This document shows, in pieces, positions 19,381 to 30,266 of a stretch of DNA of 64,000 bases. Within the stretch, counting starts at the first letter, position 1. The number at the start of each line of letters is the position of its first letter. The DNA comes from Azolla caroliniana (taxonomy: Eukaryota; Plantae; Polypodiophyta): positions 14,942,001 through 15,006,000 of the forward strand of contig JBHGNT010000005.1 in assembly GCA_043228905.1 (NCBI GenBank). Direction: 5' to 3'. The translations under genes were made by a program, and so were the position numbers. The notes beneath the pieces are model-generated. The model was given only the letters and a program-made list of their open reading frames with translations. It was not told the origin of the DNA and did not search any database.

Positions 19381-20040
19381 TGTAGGGAATATGGAATTGA
19401 CCACAACCAGTCAGCAAGCAAATCGAGAAGGACAACAGACAAAAAACAAAAACAGAAGAACACAAACACTAAGACACTAGATTTTAATGTAGAAACCCTG
19501 AATGGGAAAAAACTACGGGAGCCCATAGACTCCAAATAATATTACTATGTATATGAGTATACGAGAGACTCACTAGCAACGACCTCGAGCTCGTCTTAGT
19601 CTTACCAACTGATACACACACACACTCTCACTTAGCACACAGTGATTACAACTCACACTCTAATAATGTCCTCATACACAACATAATGATTGACCTAGGT
19701 GTATTTATAATTATACACAAGTATGGGCTATTTACAAATGTAGCCTCTAATAAGCTACGACCCAATCAACTTTCGGCTCTTAACCGGCATTCATATGATC
19801 TAGTTGGTTGGTGCTTAGTCAGTCTGCATCAAGTTCCCATATCCAGCTCTTGTTTGGACTGATCGGCTTTTGGCTGACCCTTAGCCGATAGACTACTGGT
19901 CGATCCGGCTGATATCCTGTATCTGGCTTCTTGTCTGGACAGGTCGGTCTCTAGTCGACTACTTGTCCAGATCCGACCGGATGTCTTCTAGACGATCCGG
20001 CTCCTCGTCCGGATCTAGCTTTCTTGTCCCGAGGGCTTCA
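19381..20040 (-). mobile_element. copia-type LTR remnant related to LTR 3266-4013
   Basis: Reverse complement contains GGAGTCTATGGGCTCCCGTAGTTTTTTCCC and GAGCTCGAGGTCGTTG, near-identical to motifs in 3625-3730. No matching TSD found. Confidence 0.6.
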
Positions 20041-20296
20041 CTGTGAAAACTTGTATGATAGCACGTGAGTTCATCAAAAGGGTTTAAATTAACCATTGAG
20101 ATACAGAATGTATATATATAAGGGTATTAACAAATGCATAATATATATATATATATTTATTTTTTTTTCCGGAAAAATATCCTTTCATTAGTTATGAACA
20201 ACATTACAAAAAATTGACCTACCATCAAGCTACCATTGATCTGGTGCATTCTTCCTTAGGTCCCATCCCTCAACACTCCACCACTCCTTAACCAAG

Positions 20297-23200
20297 TTAT
20301 GTGATTGGTGGTGGGAACAACCATACTGGTGGCGCTAAGCACCATTTAGGTCTTGAATTTTGTATTGTGAGAAAAGGGGTCTTCTTCCAATAGACAATAA
20401 ATTCGAGACGTTGCAACACTGCAACATCTGTCTCACCTTTAATATCCTCATACTGTCCTTTCAAGGTATGTACCATCTCCATCCAGACATTCCGTGTACT
20501 TTCCACTGGATGAATAGTAGTATTACCAAACACCTTAGAACACCTAGCAGTCCAAATAAACCACATTGTGGTGGTGCATAGTAGCTCCCATACCTCTTGC
20601 ATTGTCTTTAACATGTAAGGAGCCTCCATTTGACTTTGTTGCACCGCCATTATCCTTCCTCTTTGAATTCTAATAATCGTGTCATTTGGGCATGCATCAT
20701 ATGGCCACACCACTTGTGCCACTGTGGCCCATACTACCATACCCCACGAAAAACTGCAATCCCTAAACATAAAGGCAAGAACTCGGAACACTCGCCTCCA
20801 AACTTGCTGTGCAGCATGACATTCCCACAAGCAATGTTTCAATGTCTCCATCTGACAACAACAATAGATGCATGCGGTCGGTGCAGCTGATTGTTGCAAC
20901 CATTGGCCAATTGGCAATGCTCTATGTATTACTAACCATTGGAAGACATTTATTTTCATATCTTGCTTCCTTTTCCATAATGTTCCCCAAAACTTTGTTA
21001 GGAATTCCGATGTGATCCCTTGGTGGTTCCAACATTGACTAGCTCGTGGTGTAGTCCTACGTTGAGCTGCCAAAATGTGTCGTCCCATCTTAACTGAATA
21101 CTGAAAAAAACCATACCTTTTTCCCCTACGATCAAACGGATCTTTCCACCAAAATTCTCCCGGATCCCATTGCAACCTTATCAAAGGTTTCTTTTCAAAA
21201 ACTCTCAGTTTCCAATGCTCCTTGACCGCCTCAACTTGTGGGTCGATGAGCCACTTAGATCCGTCATAAGCAAGGACTCTTATTTTAGAAAATGTAGCAT
21301 ATTGCAAGATCTCTGTTTGTATCGTTGCACTACTTATACTGCCATCTTCCTCCACCTCATAGTCTTGACATCGTCCGCAAGACAAATGTCCCCTTACCCC
21401 CACTAGCACTTGAAGCCTCGTAAATGCTCCTTCCCACTTGGGAGGGTTAAAGGACCATATCGTAACGTCAGAGTGCCCCAAAACTGACTGCACTTGGTCC
21501 CACATAATCAGCCCCCCTCTCAAGGAAGACAAGAATTCTGATCTGTCATATATATTCAGAGTATGAAATGATTTCCATGCATCAACGGACGCTCCTGGCC
21601 CTACATCGAGCTTGGCCCAATCCAATCGCGTTCGGGACCCCAACATGTGCCCTGATGGCAAACGCATATTCGGATTCCACACTAAGTTTTGTCTCAAGTA
21701 TTCCTCCTCACATGTTGGTACACCATGTTCCAACCCTTTATGTACATGCTCCCATGCTCGTAGAAGACCATTAAAAAATTTGTCTTCCCAATTCCTAGAC
21801 ATAACATGTTTCTTGTCTGGTATAAAAATCCACCTTATGCTATCAGCCCATAATCCACCCATCGACGGAGCACAACTATACAATCTTTGCATAAGTAATT
21901 GCTTCCAAGGAGCATGTCCTGGTAAAAGGCCACGAATTATTAGTTTTGCTAACAAGGCCATGCATTGGTCTAATGGATCTAAAATCCCCAAACCACCGTA
22001 TTGTTTTGGGGTTATCAATGTACTCCAAGCCACCTTCGCTCTTACATGACTCTTATCTTCCCCAGCCCATATAAAATTCCTAACCAGCCTTCGAATTTGT
22101 CCAATGCACGATTTTGAAAAGATCCAAGATGAGGCTATATACCACACCGTAGATAGTAGCACATGGTTGGCAACTATCACTCTACCGGCCAAAGATAGTT
22201 TAGCATGACTCCACAAGAATAATTTTTTCCTCAAAGTTAATAGTAATGGTGCAGCATGTAATTCTGGAACCAAATCAATCCCAACCTGCACTCCAAGATA
22301 TCGAACCGCAACTCCTCTTTGAGTCCATTGGAAAGTATGATGCGGTGCCCAACAAGGCGGCGGCTCCTTGCTTACCCAAAATGCAACAGTTTTCTCCCAA
22401 TTTAACTTAGCTCCAGACGCTATACAAAACTGTGACAAAGCCCCTTGTACTTGTTGCAAATTCGTTAGAGTCCCATCCACATATAATGCAGTGTCATCTG
22501 CAAATTCCGAGTCCAATATATCCTGTCCATGCATTGGCATTGCCAAACCACGCAAGCCTATAGATTGTGATGATATAAATGCATGCATTGCTTCCGCAAA
22601 CAGAAGGAACAAAAATGGTGCAAGTGGACATCCTTGGCGAACTGATCGAGTAATGTTAAAACGAGGTCCTACTCCACCTGCCAACAACACCTGATTGTGT
22701 GCATTTCTATAAAGACAAGAAACACCTTTAATCCATGCCGTGTTGAAGCCCAAGTGATGCATAGTACCTTCCAAAAAATTCCAGTCAACCCTATCATACG
22801 CTTTCTCAAAATCTAAAAGCAACACGGCTAGATTTTGTTTGTTTTTTACCGCTACTGCAGTAGCCTCCCAAAATGTAAAAACATTATCCATAATACTCCT
22901 TTCCCTCATAAAACCAGTTTGCGATACATGAATTATCTTTGGTAATACCTCTTGTAACCGAGAACTAAGCAACTTTGCAAATAGCTTATAACTAGTATTC
23001 AAGAGGGTGATTAGCCTCCACTTACGAATATCTTCTGAAACTCCTTCTGTTTTAGGTATAAGATAAATAAGCCCCTCAGATAACGACATGGGCATCTCTC
23101 CACTTTCAAACATATGTTGGTAAGCATCTTTTAAGTCTTTCTTCAGTATCCCCCAATATTTCTTGTAGAATTTAGGTGTAAGTCCATCCACTCCAGGACA

Positions 23201-24643
23201 ACTATTGTCCGATAAAGAGTGTAGCGCTTGTTCCAACTCCAATTCTGTAATAGGTGACAACAATGAATCTTGCATTGCTTGAGTAACCTTGGGTTGAATT
23301 TCCGCCCAGACCTTCATTCTATTTTGGCTTATCTCCTCAGAGATAGGCTCTTCTGACAAAAGGGTAGCGTAGAATTTCGTGGCAATTACCCGCACAACAT
23401 TTGGATCCATTTCAAGTTCGCCATTTTCATTCCGCAAACAACAGGTTACATTAGAGACTCTTTTGGGGCCTTTAATATTAAAAAATTGTTTTGTACATCT
23501 ATCCCCAATTTGCGTCCATCTTGAAGCAGAGTTGTGATACCTAAATTGACTACGACATTCTTCCATATGTTGAACTTGTTTTCGGGCTTCTTCAAGATGT
23601 GAAGCTATCCACGCACACTCTGGTCGACCCTGTTGCAATCTTTGCAAAGATATCAATCTTGCCCTCATCCTTCTTTCCTTCTCCAGATATTCCATATATT
23701 CAGATCTTGATTTTAACGCAAAATATTGTGATATCTCCGTCAAAGCACAAGCCACTTTGATTGTAATGGGAGCATCCATATTATCTTTGTTCTGCCAAAT
23801 ATCTGTCACTTGATTATACCATCTATCATGTAACATTACTTTTTCGGGTATCCTAAATCGTATGGACTCCCTTTTCGATTGCCCAAAGGTTCTCAATATA
23901 ACAGGAGCATGATCAGAGAAAGTTGTGCCTGGCATAATAGTGATATTTCCCCCATTTAAGACAAAGGCCTCCCCCACATAAAATCTATCCAATCTTGAAA
24001 GATTGGTTCCAGCTATTCTCCTATCCGAACGTGAGAAACTCAAGGAATTCTGAGATCTATAAACATTAGGCATATGCCATGCATCCAAAATACTCAATTT
24101 CAAACACATCCGTTCCCATACTGCTAATTCCTCCCCATGAATTGTTGAAACACTCCCACCTTTCCTATCCTCTGGGTCCTCAAGCATATTAAAATCCCCT
24201 GCAACACACCAATGAGACACATTTGGTAATGCATTTGTAATTTCACACCAAAAGTGTTTCCTAGCCGATGCATGATTTGGCGCGTAGATATTCAAGTAAC
24301 CCCAAGTTGTATGTAAATCTTGTAATACAATATATTGTGCTCTTCCTGGCACAATGATCTCTTTGCATATAATACTTGATTTCCAATGATGTGCAATTGC
24401 CATACACACCCCGCCTTGTGTACCACTAGTGCCAATAGGCGGGGACCAAAACATCTCCCAACTACCAGGTAATATAGTGCCATAGTTCCTTATTCTTTGC
24501 TCATTCAAATGATGTTCTTGAAACATCATAATGTCCAACGATCCATTCGTGAGACACTTTTGTAATTCCTGCCTTAACCTACCTCTATATCTTCGGTATA
24601 AGGGACCTCCCAAGCCCTGAACATTCCATGTGAGGAGCCTCAT
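20297..24643 (-). CDS. LINE ORF2: APE endonuclease, reverse transcriptase, zf-RVT; 1448 aa, uninterrupted
   Basis: MRLLTWNVQGL, FQEHH, NIYAPN, GDFN, SRLDRFY, SDHAPV (endonuclease); PGVDG, LDFEKAYDRV, RQGCPLAPFLF, FADD, YLGV (RT); CIYC..ETLKHCLWEC. The real ATG is at 24643; the track start is TTG. Confidence 0.95.
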   Translation of the reverse strand: MRLLTWNVQGLGGPLYRRYRGRLRQELQKCLTNGSLDIMMFQEHHLNEQRIRNYGTILPGSWEMFWSPPIGTSGTQGGVCMAIAHHWKSSIICKEIIVPGRAQYIVLQDLHTTWGYLNIYAPNHASARKHFWCEITNALPNVSHWCVAGDFNMLEDPEDRKGGSVSTIHGEELAVWERMCLKLSILDAWHMPNVYRSQNSLSFSRSDRRIAGTNLSRLDRFYVGEAFVLNGGNITIMPGTTFSDHAPVILRTFGQSKRESIRFRIPEKVMLHDRWYNQVTDIWQNKDNMDAPITIKVACALTEISQYFALKSRSEYMEYLEKERRMRARLISLQRLQQGRPECAWIASHLEEARKQVQHMEECRSQFRYHNSASRWTQIGDRCTKQFFNIKGPKRVSNVTCCLRNENGELEMDPNVVRVIATKFYATLLSEEPISEEISQNRMKVWAEIQPKVTQAMQDSLLSPITELELEQALHSLSDNSCPGVDGLTPKFYKKYWGILKKDLKDAYQHMFESGEMPMSLSEGLIYLIPKTEGVSEDIRKWRLITLLNTSYKLFAKLLSSRLQEVLPKIIHVSQTGFMRERSIMDNVFTFWEATAVAVKNKQNLAVLLLDFEKAYDRVDWNFLEGTMHHLGFNTAWIKGVSCLYRNAHNQVLLAGGVGPRFNITRSVRQGCPLAPFLFLLFAEAMHAFISSQSIGLRGLAMPMHGQDILDSEFADDTALYVDGTLTNLQQVQGALSQFCIASGAKLNWEKTVAFWVSKEPPPCWAPHHTFQWTQRGVAVRYLGVQVGIDLVPELHAAPLLLTLRKKLFLWSHAKLSLAGRVIVANHVLLSTVWYIASSWIFSKSCIGQIRRLVRNFIWAGEDKSHVRAKVAWSTLITPKQYGGLGILDPLDQCMALLAKLIIRGLLPGHAPWKQLLMQRLYSCAPSMGGLWADSIRWIFIPDKKHVMSRNWEDKFFNGLLRAWEHVHKGLEHGVPTCEEEYLRQNLVWNPNMRLPSGHMLGSRTRLDWAKLDVGPGASVDAWKSFHTLNIYDRSEFLSSLRGGLIMWDQVQSVLGHSDVTIWSFNPPKWEGAFTRLQVLVGVRGHLSCGRCQDYEVEEDGSISSATIQTEILQYATFSKIRVLAYDGSKWLIDPQVEAVKEHWKLRVFEKKPLIRLQWDPGEFWWKDPFDRRGKRYGFFQYSVKMGRHILAAQRRTTPRASQCWNHQGITSEFLTKFWGTLWKRKQDMKINVFQWLVIHRALPIGQWLQQSAAPTACIYCCCQMETLKHCLWECHAAQQVWRRVFRVLAFMFRDCSFSWGMVVWATVAQVVWPYDACPNDTIIRIQRGRIMAVQQSQMEAPYMLKTMQEVWELLCTTTMWFIWTARCSKVFGNTTIHPVESTRNVWMEMVHTLKGQYEDIKGETDVAVLQRLEFIVYWKKTPFLTIQNSRPKWCLAPPVWLFPPPIT

Positions 24644-25769
24644 CAACAATTGTTAGAGGCCGAACCGGACCCGATCCTACGAGTCTTAGAGGATGGTTCC
24701 ACGGAGCTTACGCCACCCCCATCTCCCATAATCACCATTTGGCTTTTGAGTATGTCACAACCTTCTTTAATGAATCTCCAATGATGATGGGCCCGAGCCT
24801 TGGCTTGGCTTTCCGGCACATCATCTTCATGAATATAAACATATCCAAAATCAAACAATATATCGGAAGGTACATCCAATACAACATGCTTGCGGTTCAT
24901 TGCATCCAAATACGGAACCACTAAACAACTTGCATTCTCTAACCCCCTCAATATTGTTTCCCCCAATTGAGGATTTTGCACGTATTTGGCAAAATACAAA
25001 ACTTGTCCTCTCATGGCCAACATAACATTCGGTTGATTCCATATGTCATTTCTCTCATAACCACATAATGGAAAGGAATAACCGACCAATGAGTTTTCCA
25101 CTTGTTTTTGTCTAAATAAAACATGGACCCTTATTGCATTGGGTTCATGAACATCTTTAACACCCAAATGTTTTGTGAACTCATGCCCAAAGGGGGCTGC
25201 ATAATCAAGTATGGAAAAGCCACCATTTCCGGTATCCTCCTTCAACATCCCACATGTTCTTATTGTGATCGCATTATCCAATTTTTGTGATTGTATTGTT
25301 CTTTTTGAACGAAATGTTTTTGCCTTGACACATCCATCATTTGGTTGGGTGGTACTAACAATTTTCCCCCTTATCTCAGTAGTGGATGTTGGTTGTTCTT
25401 GTGTATCAATTTCTATGTCCAATGCATTATACGCATTAGGGGTGAGACACGTCTCTTGCATAGGCACCGTACGTGTCTTCCATCCATGCTTAACCTTTAC
25501 ATTTATCCATTGAGTGTCTCTTGTTTCCCCTTGTGCCCGTACACCCATACAATCTGAGGCTAGTTTCTCTTGACATTTATCTGCCTCATGCCCTTCTTGT
25601 TTATAATATTCGCAACAACGTTTTTTTCCCCCAATTTAATATTTCTCCTTGGGCAATTCTTGGCTAAATGTCCCATTTGCCGACAATAGAAGCATTGTCC
25701 AGGGAGCCCGGCAAACTCCACCTTTTGTTCTATAAAATCCCTTCTTCATTTGGTAGCCTTACCTTTGTC
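24643..25769 (-). pseudogene. LINE ORF1, C-terminal part (zinc knuckles and C-terminal domain), two frameshifts in homopolymer runs
   Basis: TKVRLPNEEG / DFIEQKVEFAGLPGQCFYCRQMGHLAKNC (CCHC at 25653-25694) / CCEYYKQEGHEADKC, continuing in frame into ORF 24643-25548. Confidence 0.85.
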
Positions 25770-25802
25770 GATCTTGCCTCGATAACAGAGACTGGAAACG
25801 AG

Positions 25803-26406
25803 ATGGAGGAACAGGGAAGAGAGAGAACGCAGCAGAGAGCCACCTCAACGACACAACAGGGGAACTCTAAAGAAGCAGCCCCGCCAACAGAATCTGAGGA
25901 GCGGCCTCTACCGATCGTATTCTCGACAGAAGAAGAGGCTGAATTCAAATCAGAGATTCAGCGCCTAACTCAACTCTCGGTGATCTGCAGAGTGGTGGGA
26001 GCTCGGCCGAATAGAGGTGAGTGTAAAGATTTATTACAAGCATCTATGCATGGATTAATTGGTAGAATAATAGATGTCCAATTCATGGGACGAGGATTTT
26101 ATCATGTGGAATTGGATACAATCGAATCAGTGGGAATAATGTTGGAGCATAGTCCTCTTGATGTAAGAGGTGCCCGTGCATTTGTGATGCCTTGGAAACA
26201 AGGTTTTAATCCGGTGGAGGCAATACGGAAAGGAGATCGGATATTTCCGTTAACGATTGTCTTCCCGGGATTACGTAAGGAGTATTTACCGATGCTTGAA
26301 GCAATAGCTTCAAGGATCGGAACTGTAGTGAGGGTCCAAGAAAGTATGGCTATGCGATTAAGTAAAATGTCAGGATTTCCGTCAGCCCGAATCTTGGTAG
26401 AATCAC
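25803..26406 (+). pseudogene. LINE ORF1, N-terminal part (DUF4283/RRM-like), inverted relative to the rest of the element
   Basis: MEEQGRER...SVICRVVGARP..IDVQFMGRGFYHVEL..MPWKQGFNP..IVFPGLRKEY..IASRIGTVV..ARILVES is the usual plant L1 ORF1 pattern that precedes the zinc knuckle. Confidence 0.85.
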
Positions 26407-26429
26407 ACATAAAAAATATATTTACATAA

Positions 26430-26911
26430 GGGTAATTATCAATTATGTTATAGAAAAAAATTACATAAGCCCATGAAATATTAGATATTTCAATGAGATA
26501 ATAAAGAATATATTGTGCAAACAATAGTCAAATTTGGAGTGGCATACATACATACATACATATACATGCATACAAGCATATATGTACCTACATTTAAACA
26601 TTACATCCATAAATATGTATATACATACATTACACCCATTTATACATGCATACTGACTAAACATGAATATGTATAGAAATATATATTACCATATGTAGAT
26701 ATGTACATACACATACATAAATACAAATATGTAAATGCATACATGCTACATACATATTATAATAAGCCATATGTATTGACAAATGTTAATACATGCATAA
26801 AAATTTCATATTACATATCATATGATCCATTCATATTACACAATATACAAATTTACATACACATACATACACTGCATTACATATATACATATACATACAT
26901 ACATACATACA

Positions 26912-26947
<36 letters not shown>

Positions 26948-27477
26948 TATTACATATGTACATACATATTCCACATATCGCCATATATATATATATATAT
27001 ATATATAGGTTATATGGAACCATACAACCTACAATACTTACATATATACATACATACACACACACACACATCGGATATATGACTGCATATTACGTACATA
27101 TTGAAAACATAAATTCATATACGATCCATACACATACTAGACATGAAAATATCCCAAAAATAATACATTACATATATACACATACGTACATTCATACATG
27201 TACATGCATATATTCATTCATAGATGGCTACACATATATACGTACATATGCCTACAATGTTACATATACAAATTTTACAAACATACATCCATACACATAC
27301 ATACATACATTACATATGTACATACATATCACCACATACACGAACATAGACACACACATGGTCATACACACTATAATAGTACATATATGCATACACATAC
27401 ATACATTAGATATATACATACATATTATGCACATATTATAAACACACATCCAGACACATTAAATCATGTGCATTGAC
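26430..27477. repeat. CA/TA-rich low-complexity tract (ACAT, AT microsatellites); continues at 34422-35580 beyond the gypsy insertion
   Basis: Directly visible. Confidence 0.9.
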
Positions 27478-27481
27478 ACGT

Positions 27482-28095
27482 TGTCGTGAAGAAAACCGTC
27501 CACAAGCGGAATCGGTGCACAGGAGCGTAGGAACCGGCTCTTCTCGAATGTTGTCCATAGAAGATCCTAGGCAGGTAGATTTAGTGGGTAGGAAGTAAAG
27601 GGGAAACGGCTCCTTCCTTGCCTATAAAAGGAGGGAGACGCGAAGGGGGAGGGCATCGCGGAGAGTCGAGGACGAAGTGCTGTCGGTTTAGGTGCGAAGA
27701 CTTTTCTCTCTCTCTCTCTGGTTCACAAGCTCCATAGCTTCCTTCTGTGCAGGTTTCGGGAGGCTCGCGCTGCTCTGAGGAATGCCCGAGTGCTTCCGGC
27801 AGCACCTCCAACCTACTCCTTCCTTCCTGTGTGTTTACGAACAGGTATCGGCATCTGTTCGCCGGCCTGTTCGGTTGTAATCGACTTCGCGTTTTGTCGT
27901 TTGTCTTTGTTAGTACATACATACCTTCGTGTCTCTCTGTGTCGCTATCCCACTCGCGTCTTTGTGTCGAAGGGCCGTGTCCCTGTGAATCTACTCTCGC
28001 ACGTAGTGGGTCTCTTCTCTTTTCTCTCTTGCTCTTCGGTACAGGACCCCCGAGGTCCCGCCTCATTCCACGCATCCGCGAGGAATACCTCGACA
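27482..28095 (+). repeat. 5' LTR
   Basis: Direct repeat of 33804-34417; TATA-like CCTATAAAAG at about 27621. Confidence 0.97.
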
Positions 28096-28099
28096 TCTT

Positions 28100-28117
28100 T
28101 GGTGAACCCGACATGAA
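28100..28117 (+). promoter_or_regulatory. primer binding site complementary to the tRNA-Trp(CCA) 3' end
   Basis: TGGTGAACCCGACATGAA matches 17/18 of the complement of the plant tRNA-Trp end TTCACGTCGGGTTCACCA (recalled); the second copy (49093-49110) matches 18/18. Confidence 0.85.
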
Positions 28118-28139
28118 GGAGGCGGCAGAAGAGCAGAAG

Positions 28140-30266
28140 ATGAAAGGGTCGGATCTTGCGGAGGCCATGGCTTCGGCCGTGGATCGGATATTGAGTACAC
28201 GCGAGGGCGCCGGCGCCCTCGACAGAGCCATTGAGGCGGTCGTCGGTACGATCGGCCGGTTCAGCGGAAGGGATGCCACGAAGTATTTGGCATCCTACGG
28301 GGCAGAAATGCTGATGCGGGACATTCCGGAAGAGAGGCGTCTTGCCGGGTTTCCTTGAGTGGCGATGCCGAGCATCCATGCGGAGGTGCTCGAGGTGCGG
28401 GCGGAGAGCCGTACCTGGGAGGAGTTCGAAGGTCGACTCCTGGAAAAATACGGGCTGGACGACGCGCTCCGGCTTTCGAAACGAGACTTCATGGAATGGG
28501 TGGAGTCCCCCGGCAAGGGAAGAAACGCGTTGGCACTCCTCCGGGAGTTCGAAGAACGCTTTGCGCGCCTTTCGGCGCTTGACCGAACCGTTCTGGATAC
28601 GAGCCGGGTCCTACTGTTCGTCAAGTCGGTGGACGAGCGAGACAGGGATCAAGTCGGCTCCTTGCTGGAAACTGAAGACGGGCTGACAACCGACTGGGCT
28701 GCGGTTAAGAGAGTCTGTGGCCATTTTGACAAATGGCGAGAATGGGCTGACAACGGGGCGGCTGGTGCGGGCTCTGTCACAGCAAGGAGACTTGAACTGG
28801 CACCGCAAGTGCAAAGGGAAGAAACCCGGGAATGGCTCGAAACCGGTCCGGCTTCGACCGGCATGGTCAATGGCTCGTCCGGAGGAGCAGCGCTGGAGGA
28901 GTTGACGCGGGCGATAAAGGATCTCCAGATCGCCCAGGCTCGAAGGGAAGGCGGTGAACCAGCTCGGGACCGACGGTCGGCAGCGGGGAACAGGTGCATG
29001 TGGTGCGACGAGGTCGGCCACATTCCGAAGGACTGCGGCGATTTCGCAGAGGCGTTGAGAAACAGGGTGGTGTACCTGTGGGAAGGCCGGGTGCACGCTG
29101 GCGACACTAGGAGGGCCCTGAACCGAAACGACGGGCGAGGAGGTATGAAGAGACTGATGGAAGAGGCAGTGGCCCGACACGTGGAGGCCATCCACTACTC
29201 GGCGTCGGCCGGTATTCGGGTCGGGGGCAGCGAAGCCCGAAAGGAGAGCAAAGACGGTTTCTGGTCGGCAATGCTGGAAGGCCTCGCCGACGCACGGCTG
29301 AGGAAAGATGAAACGGACCGCGCTGAGAGACGGGTCCGGGAAATAATCGGGTGGAGCGATCCGGTCGAGGAGAAGACGGGCTTCGTAGAGGCCTCCTGCC
29401 GGAACTACGAGGCTCTGGTAGAAGAAAAACGAGTGGGGAAAGCCGGAGCGGCCGGGCCCTCACAACGGTACGAGACCCGATCCGGGCAACGACGGAACGA
29501 TGCCGGTGGGTCCGGCTCACGAGATAACCCCAGGAAGGGCGGGTACCGACTGGGGACGGAAATAGAAAGGACTACGGACCTACGAAAGGTCCTAGAAGAA
29601 CGGATCCTCGACAGCAAAGTGGAGCTGTCATTACGGGAGGTGCTAGGGATCGCCAAGAAGGAGTTCCACGACTCCATTGTAGACTTGGTGAAACGGAAGA
29701 GACTGTTGATGGAGACGGAACCGGAAAGACCGGTGGAGGTGCGGACGACGCACATCGACAACTCGGCGCTGGAAGATGAGTGGGCGGAGAGCCACTATTC
29801 GAGGCCACACTGGGCCCGAGCGACCACGGAGACCCCGGTAAAGATCAGAGATGTTCAGGAACCGGTGGTGGCGTTGGTGGACCACGGTTCGGAAATAAAC
29901 CTAATGTCCATGGACTTCTATAAGAAGGGAAAATGGCCGATCAACACCAGGCACGGGTGGAAGATACGGGCGGTGACGCGCGCCACCGAGGAACTGCACG
30001 GGGCCTGCCCGAATGTGCGAGTAAAGATCGGCGACGTCGAGATTGACCAACACTTCTTCGTACAGGAGACGTCCTCGCATCCGGTCATATTAGGGGAACC
30101 ATACATCACGGCGGCGAGAATGGAGACCAAGGTGCTGGACAACGGTTCGGCCTACGCTAGGGTCAAAAGCCAGGACGGGCGCCATTCGGTGCAATTTCTG
30201 ACGGTGCAGCCGAACCACGAGAGAAACCGCGAATCCCTCGGTGGCGAGAGCCGGGAGGATTTTTAG
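28140..30266 (+). pseudogene. gag: gag-protease with one premature TGA at 28356-28358
   Basis: CCHC knuckle CMWCDEVGHIPKDC; protease-like ALVDHGSEINLM...VILGEPYI. The stop aligns with Arg (CGA) in the sister element. Confidence 0.9.

Follow-up and report, generated by a model that had tools for sequence, protein, structure and literature searches.

A 5'-inverted L1-type LINE in the fern Azolla caroliniana: probable twin priming at a site that also holds a non-inverted copy

The window considered here, a stretch of 64,000 nucleotides (nt) from the fern Azolla caroliniana, contains a long interspersed nuclear element (LINE) of the L1 type whose 5' part lies inverted with respect to the rest. 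The structure itself is observed: two arms on opposite strands with defined break points, a deletion and a filler between them, a target-site duplication around them, and an inverted arm that is complete at its 5' end. Aligned with non-inverted family copies, the element is one full-length L1-type LINE. The reading that we favour, with moderate confidence, is that this copy was produced when a young L1-type LINE retrotransposed once and the insertion was resolved by twin priming, and that a non-inverted copy present at the same flank in two metagenome contigs (L012 and L013) arose by a later event at the same site. We infer that a single RNA gave rise to both arms in a single event, and that the L012/L013 copy would have entered the same endonuclease site separately and later, rather than being the precursor of an in-situ inversion. 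To the full combination, namely twin priming in a fern L1-type LINE reaching as far as the RNA 5' end, plus two independent uses of the same AT-rich endonuclease site, once by the twin-primed window copy and once by the ordinary L012/L013 copy, we give about an even chance.

Family copies were found by a word search with the second open reading frame (ORF2) in ENA metagenome assemblies, which gave a family with 99% identity, and four further contigs were recovered via a DNA pattern. Counting same-locus pairs once, there are nine other independent loci (L001/L008, L004-L007, L009-L011, L012/L013 and L014; L012 and L013 come from samples ERZ1034429 and ERZ1034427, respectively), whose bodies are 98.4-99.9% identical between loci. 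The full-length copies consist of ORF1 (581 amino acids, aa) followed by ORF2 (1448 aa), an order also present in the more distant relatives L002 (~80% identical) and L003 (~70%), and the inversion occurs at none of the nine loci. An N-terminus of the inverted-junction type was likewise found in none of the nine ORF1-cluster members with a length other than 581 aa, among the 15 listed of 45.

When aligned to L001, the window element falls into two arms. Positions 25770-20281 on the minus strand correspond to L001 1201-6693 with 98.9% identity, and positions 25795-26406 on the plus strand correspond to L001 577-1188 with 99.7% identity; alignment to L004 gives the same two-arm picture, and the plus arm is 99.7-99.8% identical to family copies, a value that led us to reject its origin from another LINE family, which an earlier note on this DNA had named as the outcome that would speak against its reading. 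Exactly 12 nt between the arms are missing (L001 1189-1200, TCGAAAACTTAC), equivalent to four codons. Both arms match neighbouring segments of a single family at about 99% identity, which excludes a chance origin. Homology in every full-length copy starts within a few nt of AAACGAGATGG, so the inverted arm reaches the family 5' end, a terminus defined by the nine other loci; at their 3' end these copies carry a short poly(A). Within the 5' untranslated region (UTR) of the window, TCGATAACAGAGACTGGAAAC, the motif TCGATA is common to L007 and L012, and GATAACAGA is common to L001.

Alignment with the family copies thus places ORF2, the 3' part of ORF1 and the poly(A) on the minus strand, and the 5' UTR with ORF1 codons 1-201 on the plus strand. 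The sense arm runs from family position 1201 to the poly(A) (minus strand, 25770-20160), and the inverted arm comprises the 5' UTR and ORF1 codons 1-201 (plus strand, 25779-26406). The features of the locus are the following:

20137-20159: left copy of the target-site duplication, CATAATATATATATATATATTTA, which stops exactly at the start of the T-run.
20160-20168, minus strand: poly(A) tail, T9 when read on the plus strand; at this position L004-L007 have terminal runs of A7-A15.
20169-20296, minus strand: 3' UTR, alignable with the 3' UTRs of L004, L005, L006 and L007.
20297-24649, minus strand: uninterrupted ORF2 of 1450 aa from TTG, with endonuclease, reverse transcriptase and zf-RVT domains.
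24646-25770, minus strand: 3' part of ORF1, beginning at family position 1201 and containing two CCHC knuckles; its frame is broken twice.
25771-25778: filler of 8 nt, ATCTTGCC, at the internal junction, absent from every family copy.
25779-25802, plus strand: inverted 5' UTR of 24 nt, TCGATAACAGAGACTGGAAACGAG, extending to the family 5' end.
25803-26406, plus strand: inverted ORF1 codons 1-201, with the ATG at 25803, weakly DUF4283-like, ending in ...ARILVES.
26407-26424: a single additional A (26407), followed by the right-hand duplication copy, CATAAAAAATATATTTA (26408-26424).
26413-26514: flank common to contigs L012 and L013, which hold a non-inverted copy there.

Much of this layout had been described in the earlier note, which was made from the sequence alone. 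The poly(A), ORF2 and zinc-knuckle half of ORF1 that it placed on the minus strand, ending at about 25769, are present there within 1-2 bases (25770), and flipping the plus segment does restore the normal order, the loss of a few codons that it expected being the 12 nt, four codons' worth, missing relative to L001. Its proposal that the 5' tip of the element lies at the internal junction and the internal breakpoint at the flank agrees with an inverted arm that is 5'-complete and a duplication that begins 1 nt away. The check it had put forward, an alignment with non-inverted copies, defined both the deletion (12 nt) and the filler (8 nt), and the flank is not inverted along with the plus segment, an extension that the note had regarded as incompatible with its reading. 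The plus-strand leader, the ATG at 25803 and the ARILVES end were also found, whereas the label DUF4283-like applies only weakly, the match of this LINE family to DUF4283 (PF14111) having an E value of 0.0014-0.01 and 16-19 bits against a Pfam cut-off of 27.2.

The target-site duplication CATAA...ATATATTTA brackets the entire two-arm structure (20137-20159 and 26408-26424), and the pattern CATAA[AT]{0,14}ATATATTTA has only these two matches on both strands of the 64-kb window. At the right junction, the plus strand reads ...ATCAC of the element, A (26407), CATAAAAAATATATTTA and then CATAAGGG, that is, the right duplication copy adjoins the inverted arm with 1 extra nt. Read by eye, the filler ATCTTGCC resembles GAATCTTGG, which adjoins the other breakpoint (26389-26397). 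The nick would have been 5'-ATATTTA/CATAAG-3' on the plus strand, a T-rich site that differs from the canonical TTTT/A.

This bounded structure bears on the most trivial explanations, an assembly artefact or two unrelated nested insertions abutting by coincidence, which we regard as very improbable. An artefact would not yield the 12-nt deletion, the 8-nt filler and the bounding duplication together, and an ORF2 that runs without a frameshift over 4.3 kb indicates that the consensus quality is good. As for nested insertions, the plus arm has neither a 3' end of its own nor a poly(A), so that it is not an insertion by itself, and its break point lies only 12 nt from the start of the sense arm within a 6.2-kb element. 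What could be held in favour of an artefact is that 20 public DNA runs from 10 studies contain 0.05-0.67 of the sampled words, roughly only the share expected from family copies; since the top value equals this element-only share, the word shares are uninformative on this locus.

Under twin priming, the structure would have arisen in a few steps. The endonuclease of the element would nick the plus strand of the window at ...ATATTTA/CATAAGG, and the T-rich end would prime reverse transcription on the poly(A), the first complementary DNA (cDNA) extending from the tail to family position 1201. The second strand would be nicked 17 nt away, and the other 3' end would prime on that RNA immediately 3' of position 1188, copying to the RNA 5' end and thereby generating the inverted arm. 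End joining of the two cDNA ends, at the cost of 12 nt and with the addition of 8 nt of filler, would complete the process.

The best comparison is provided by the twin-primed (5'-inverted) L1 of mammals (Ostertag and Kazazian 2001), as described in PMC2837659 and PMC3219598. The window element shares with them the arms in opposite orientation, the inverted 5' part, the small internal deletion, the poly(A) on the sense arm and the bounding duplication, as well as the lack of clear microhomology at the internal junction, which is reported for some loci in PMC2837659. It differs in its host, a fern, and in belonging to the L1-type LINEs of plants, its ORF1 being of the zinc-knuckle, DUF4283-like kind and its 5' UTR measuring only ~24 nt. 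Most human L1 insertions are truncated at the 5' end (PMC2837659), whereas the inverted arm here is 5'-complete, and the same site in related samples holds a non-inverted copy.

This last difference is the main difficulty for the twin-priming account, and it is one reason why the proposal of the earlier note stands only in part: the architecture (arms, poly(A), deletion and duplication) was borne out, whereas the origin in a single event was not. In L012, and in L013 from the other sample, the 5' flank matches window 26514-26413 with 87% identity over 102 nt, the distal 54 nt (L012 2-55, window 26514-26461) being 98% identical (E 8e-24). From the shared flank, both contigs run directly into a normal 5' UTR and then an intact ORF1, followed by ORF2. 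The L012 copy (L012:134-6225) is near-consensus, with both ORFs intact (581 aa for ORF1, 1448 aa for ORF2) and ~20x coverage, which makes it a candidate active copy on sequence grounds; its contig ends before the 3' end of the element, and the L013 copy (L013:74-4788) ends inside ORF2. An assembly chimera was rejected as the source of L012, its join having only ~10 nt of low complexity and the identical junction occurring in two samples, and so was a 5' transduction of the shared flank, which would put the flank at the internal junction and not outside.

Several observations therefore have to be set against the reading that we favour. The non-inverted copy lies at the same flank within ~5 nt, as expected under in-situ inversion, and the 12 nt missing from the window are present in L012 and L013; because L012 has them, re-inversion of the window state could not have produced the non-inverted copy. 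Taken alone, the shared flank and these 12 nt favour a normal insertion with a subsequent flip. In such a DNA-level inversion, a normal full-length copy in the L012/L013 state would have had a 630-bp segment (5' end to position 1188) turned round, either through two breaks that were then end-joined or through template switching during replication, with the 12 nt lost and the filler gained. The distribution of mutations beside both junctions also speaks for it. Within the sense arm, 5 of 15 window-private changes fall within 300 nt of the internal junction (P = 5e-4), or 3 of 13 when the two homopolymer deletions are left out and only substitutions are counted (P = 0.02), and the differences between the flanks of the window and L012 cluster beside the junction (P = 9e-4). 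An error-prone DNA-level rearrangement fits both clusters equally well, and the likeness of the filler to the sequence adjoining the other breakpoint is a further point in its favour. Additional points against twin priming are that the two duplication copies differ in the middle, (TA)n in one and an A-run in the other, and that microhomology at the flank junction, which the earlier note had wished to see defined, amounts to an unconvincing 3 of 6 positions (ACATAA and TCGAAA after family position 1188), about chance in AT-rich DNA. The empty allele, also sought in line with that note, gave 0 matches with a gapped pattern of both flanks in the metagenome contigs. The junctions are without record in any independent assembly: exact look-ups of the ORF over the internal junction (253 aa), the ORF over the 3' junction (34 aa) and the window-specific ORF1 fragment of 301 aa returned none. 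Finally, two uses of one site by a low-copy family are improbable a priori.

In the flank, window 26447-26464 reads AGAAAAAAATT where L012:50-70 (reverse complement) reads GGAATTTTTTTTT, that is, A9TT versus AAT7. Here a micro-inversion of 11 nt seems to have taken place, ~45 nt away from the junction with the LINE; it would explain the flank difference better than 7-10 substitutions and would accord with a rearrangement of the DNA. However, the end joining that closes twin priming could leave the same marks, both the clusters and the likeness of the filler, and the low-complexity flank near the junction mutates readily.

Despite these points, we judge a later DNA-level inversion to be unlikely. 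To begin with, one of its breakpoints must lie within ~1 nt of the boundary between duplication and 5' UTR. The L012 duplication copy, AATATATATTTA, has 12 nt and is preceded by TTG, whereas both window copies start with CATAA; since the L012 duplication lacks the CAT of the window copies, its second-strand nick differed from that of the window. The 24-nt UTRs of L012 and the window are separated by 2 substitutions and 2 indels, as compared with 18 substitutions (0.3%) in the 6.1-kb bodies, and in-place inheritance of such a UTR divergence has a P of about 1e-6. Because the window agrees with L001 at two of the differing UTR positions, it is L012 that carries the changed UTR state, even though L012 has no rearrangement that could account for the change. 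The window thus combines the CAT of the duplication with a family-typical UTR, L012 has neither, and a direct precursor would need several extra changes. A different normal precursor would still require two uses of the site plus the breakpoint coincidence.

The private mutations argue in the same direction. Polarised with the outgroups L002 and L003, most bases private to the window are derived, and the private derived changes amount to ~10 substitutions and 2 frameshifts in the window, 3 in L012 and 0 in L013; the asymmetry between the window and L013, 12:0, has a P of 2e-4, and the range of tests gave P values from 2e-4 to 0.02. The sub-lineage markers 367T (inverted arm) and 3873T (sense arm) occur both together only in the window, L012 and L013. 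Among the informative sites, 367T and 3873T unite the window with L012, whereas 3003, 5408 and 5501 unite L012 with the rest, and because of this conflict the tree cannot settle the orthology of the window and L012 copies.

The behaviour of the 5' UTR across the family is relevant here. It comprises only ~20-25 nt before the ATG of ORF1 and is hypervariable between loci (L001, L004-L014 and window 25779-25802). Same-locus pairs from different samples (L001/L008 and L012/L013) have identical UTRs, while L004 and L005, with bodies 99.9% alike, have UTRs that cannot be aligned; UTR differences therefore mark separate retrotransposition events. The variation seems to arise with each event, either because the 5' end erodes and accretes or because initiation takes place upstream, in the flank of the master copy.

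In a third scenario, the twin-primed copy would be ancestral and the L012 state would result from a new insertion into the preserved 5' copy of the duplication, with the old copy lost or the tandem copies recombining, or from cDNA-templated repair. The 12-nt duplication of L012 is indeed a subset of the right copy in the window, and the UTR of L012 is fresh and its body close to the consensus; no junction ORF of the old copy is on record, though, and we consider such a replacement rather improbable, more so than a later inversion. As it leaves the window copy twin-primed, it is counted inside our confidence in twin priming. The remainder of our confidence goes to other complex histories.

Repeated use of one site, on which the twin-priming reading depends, has been described in humans, where single L1-endonuclease integration sites in NF1, APC, F9 and BTK were used repeatedly and independently, with duplications of differing length (PMC3219598); differing duplication length is the criterion of Wimmer et al. 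for independent events (PMC3219598). The window copy and L012 resemble these cases in lying within ~5 nt of each other at a shared flank with different duplication lengths. They differ from them in that the host is a plant and that a single low-copy LINE family is involved, with one twin-primed and one ordinary copy, and in that the comparison is made on the 5' side of L012. If true, the double use of one endonuclease site would make this plant locus a hot spot of retrotransposition at the level of single nucleotides.

Twin priming accounts for 18.7% of polymorphic human L1 insertions (PMC11484939). In plants, the earlier note had thought it to be much less documented, and the literature searched agrees: among the listed publications that name twin priming, we found no description for a plant element, and one plant SINE (short interspersed nuclear element) paper merely cites the original article. 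A fern case at base resolution would suggest that twin priming comes with L1-type target-primed reverse transcription in general instead of being peculiar to mammals. Twin priming is also a main way in which new copies arise already dead. For the annotation of plant transposable elements, this means that such opposite-strand pairs should be joined rather than counted as two elements. The value of the case lies mainly in a cleanly resolved plant example and in a testable two-state locus. This locus lends itself to a natural test of twin priming versus later inversion, and of whether plant integration sites are used more than once.

Regarding its coding capacity, the element conforms to the L1-clade LINEs of plants in the order of endonuclease, reverse transcriptase and zf-RVT in ORF2 and in the CCHC knuckle of ORF1. 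Profile matches in ORF2 were obtained to Exo_endo_phos (PF03372, E 1.8e-8), RVT_1 (PF00078, E 5.7e-32) and zf-RVT (PF13966, E 1.3e-9), and an ATG at 24643 would give an ORF2 of 1448 aa, the length in the family copies; the nearest named plant proteins to ORF2 have 24-26% identity. The zf-CCHC match of the minus-strand ORF1 piece lies at 25563-25721 (E 2e-6, 28 bits; 22.9 bits for the ORF1 of L012). Unlike plant L1-clade LINEs with DUF4283, this family stays under the Pfam cut-off for that domain; a 58%-identical relative, P0053, carries PF14111 together with PF00098. On the minus strand, the peptide TKVRLPNEEG starts at the break at 25770, in a frame other than that of the zinc-knuckle piece, and ARILVES on the plus strand ends at 26405/6. 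The minus-strand ORF1 part is frameshifted by two 1-nt deletions, one in a C-run (25739-25741) and one in a T-run (25621-25627), details that the earlier note had left unmentioned. Both sit in homopolymer runs (G4 -> G3, A8 -> A7), while the 4.3-kb ORF2 is free of frameshifts.

The surroundings of the insertion are themselves repetitive. A 35-nt direct repeat with 74% identity (..ATAAGGGTA.TTA.CAA.T..) lies on either side of it, at 20101-20135 and 26409-26443; the target is a diverged local tandem duplication, and the target-site duplication is the stretch between the two units. Further to the left, at 19893-20021, there is a 37-nt direct repeat with 70% identity (CTACTGGTCGATCCGGCTG... and CTTCTAGACGATCCGGCTC...) in a region GC-richer than its surroundings, which may be the end of another repeat; a word search with the 45-aa ORF of the left flank gave no candidate. 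Blocks of the (ACAT/TGTA)n or (TA)n type adjoin L001, L002, L003, L005 and L006 as well as the window element (26540-27450). For the family and its relatives, 6 of 20 flanks lie beside alternating purine/pyrimidine microsatellites, compared with 5.9% of background windows (P = 8e-4). This adjacency may reflect a target preference of the family, and it narrows its target space. Beyond the microsatellite block, window 27581-28379 is GC-rich and contains long overlapping ORFs, of 232 aa on the minus strand and 203 aa on the plus strand.

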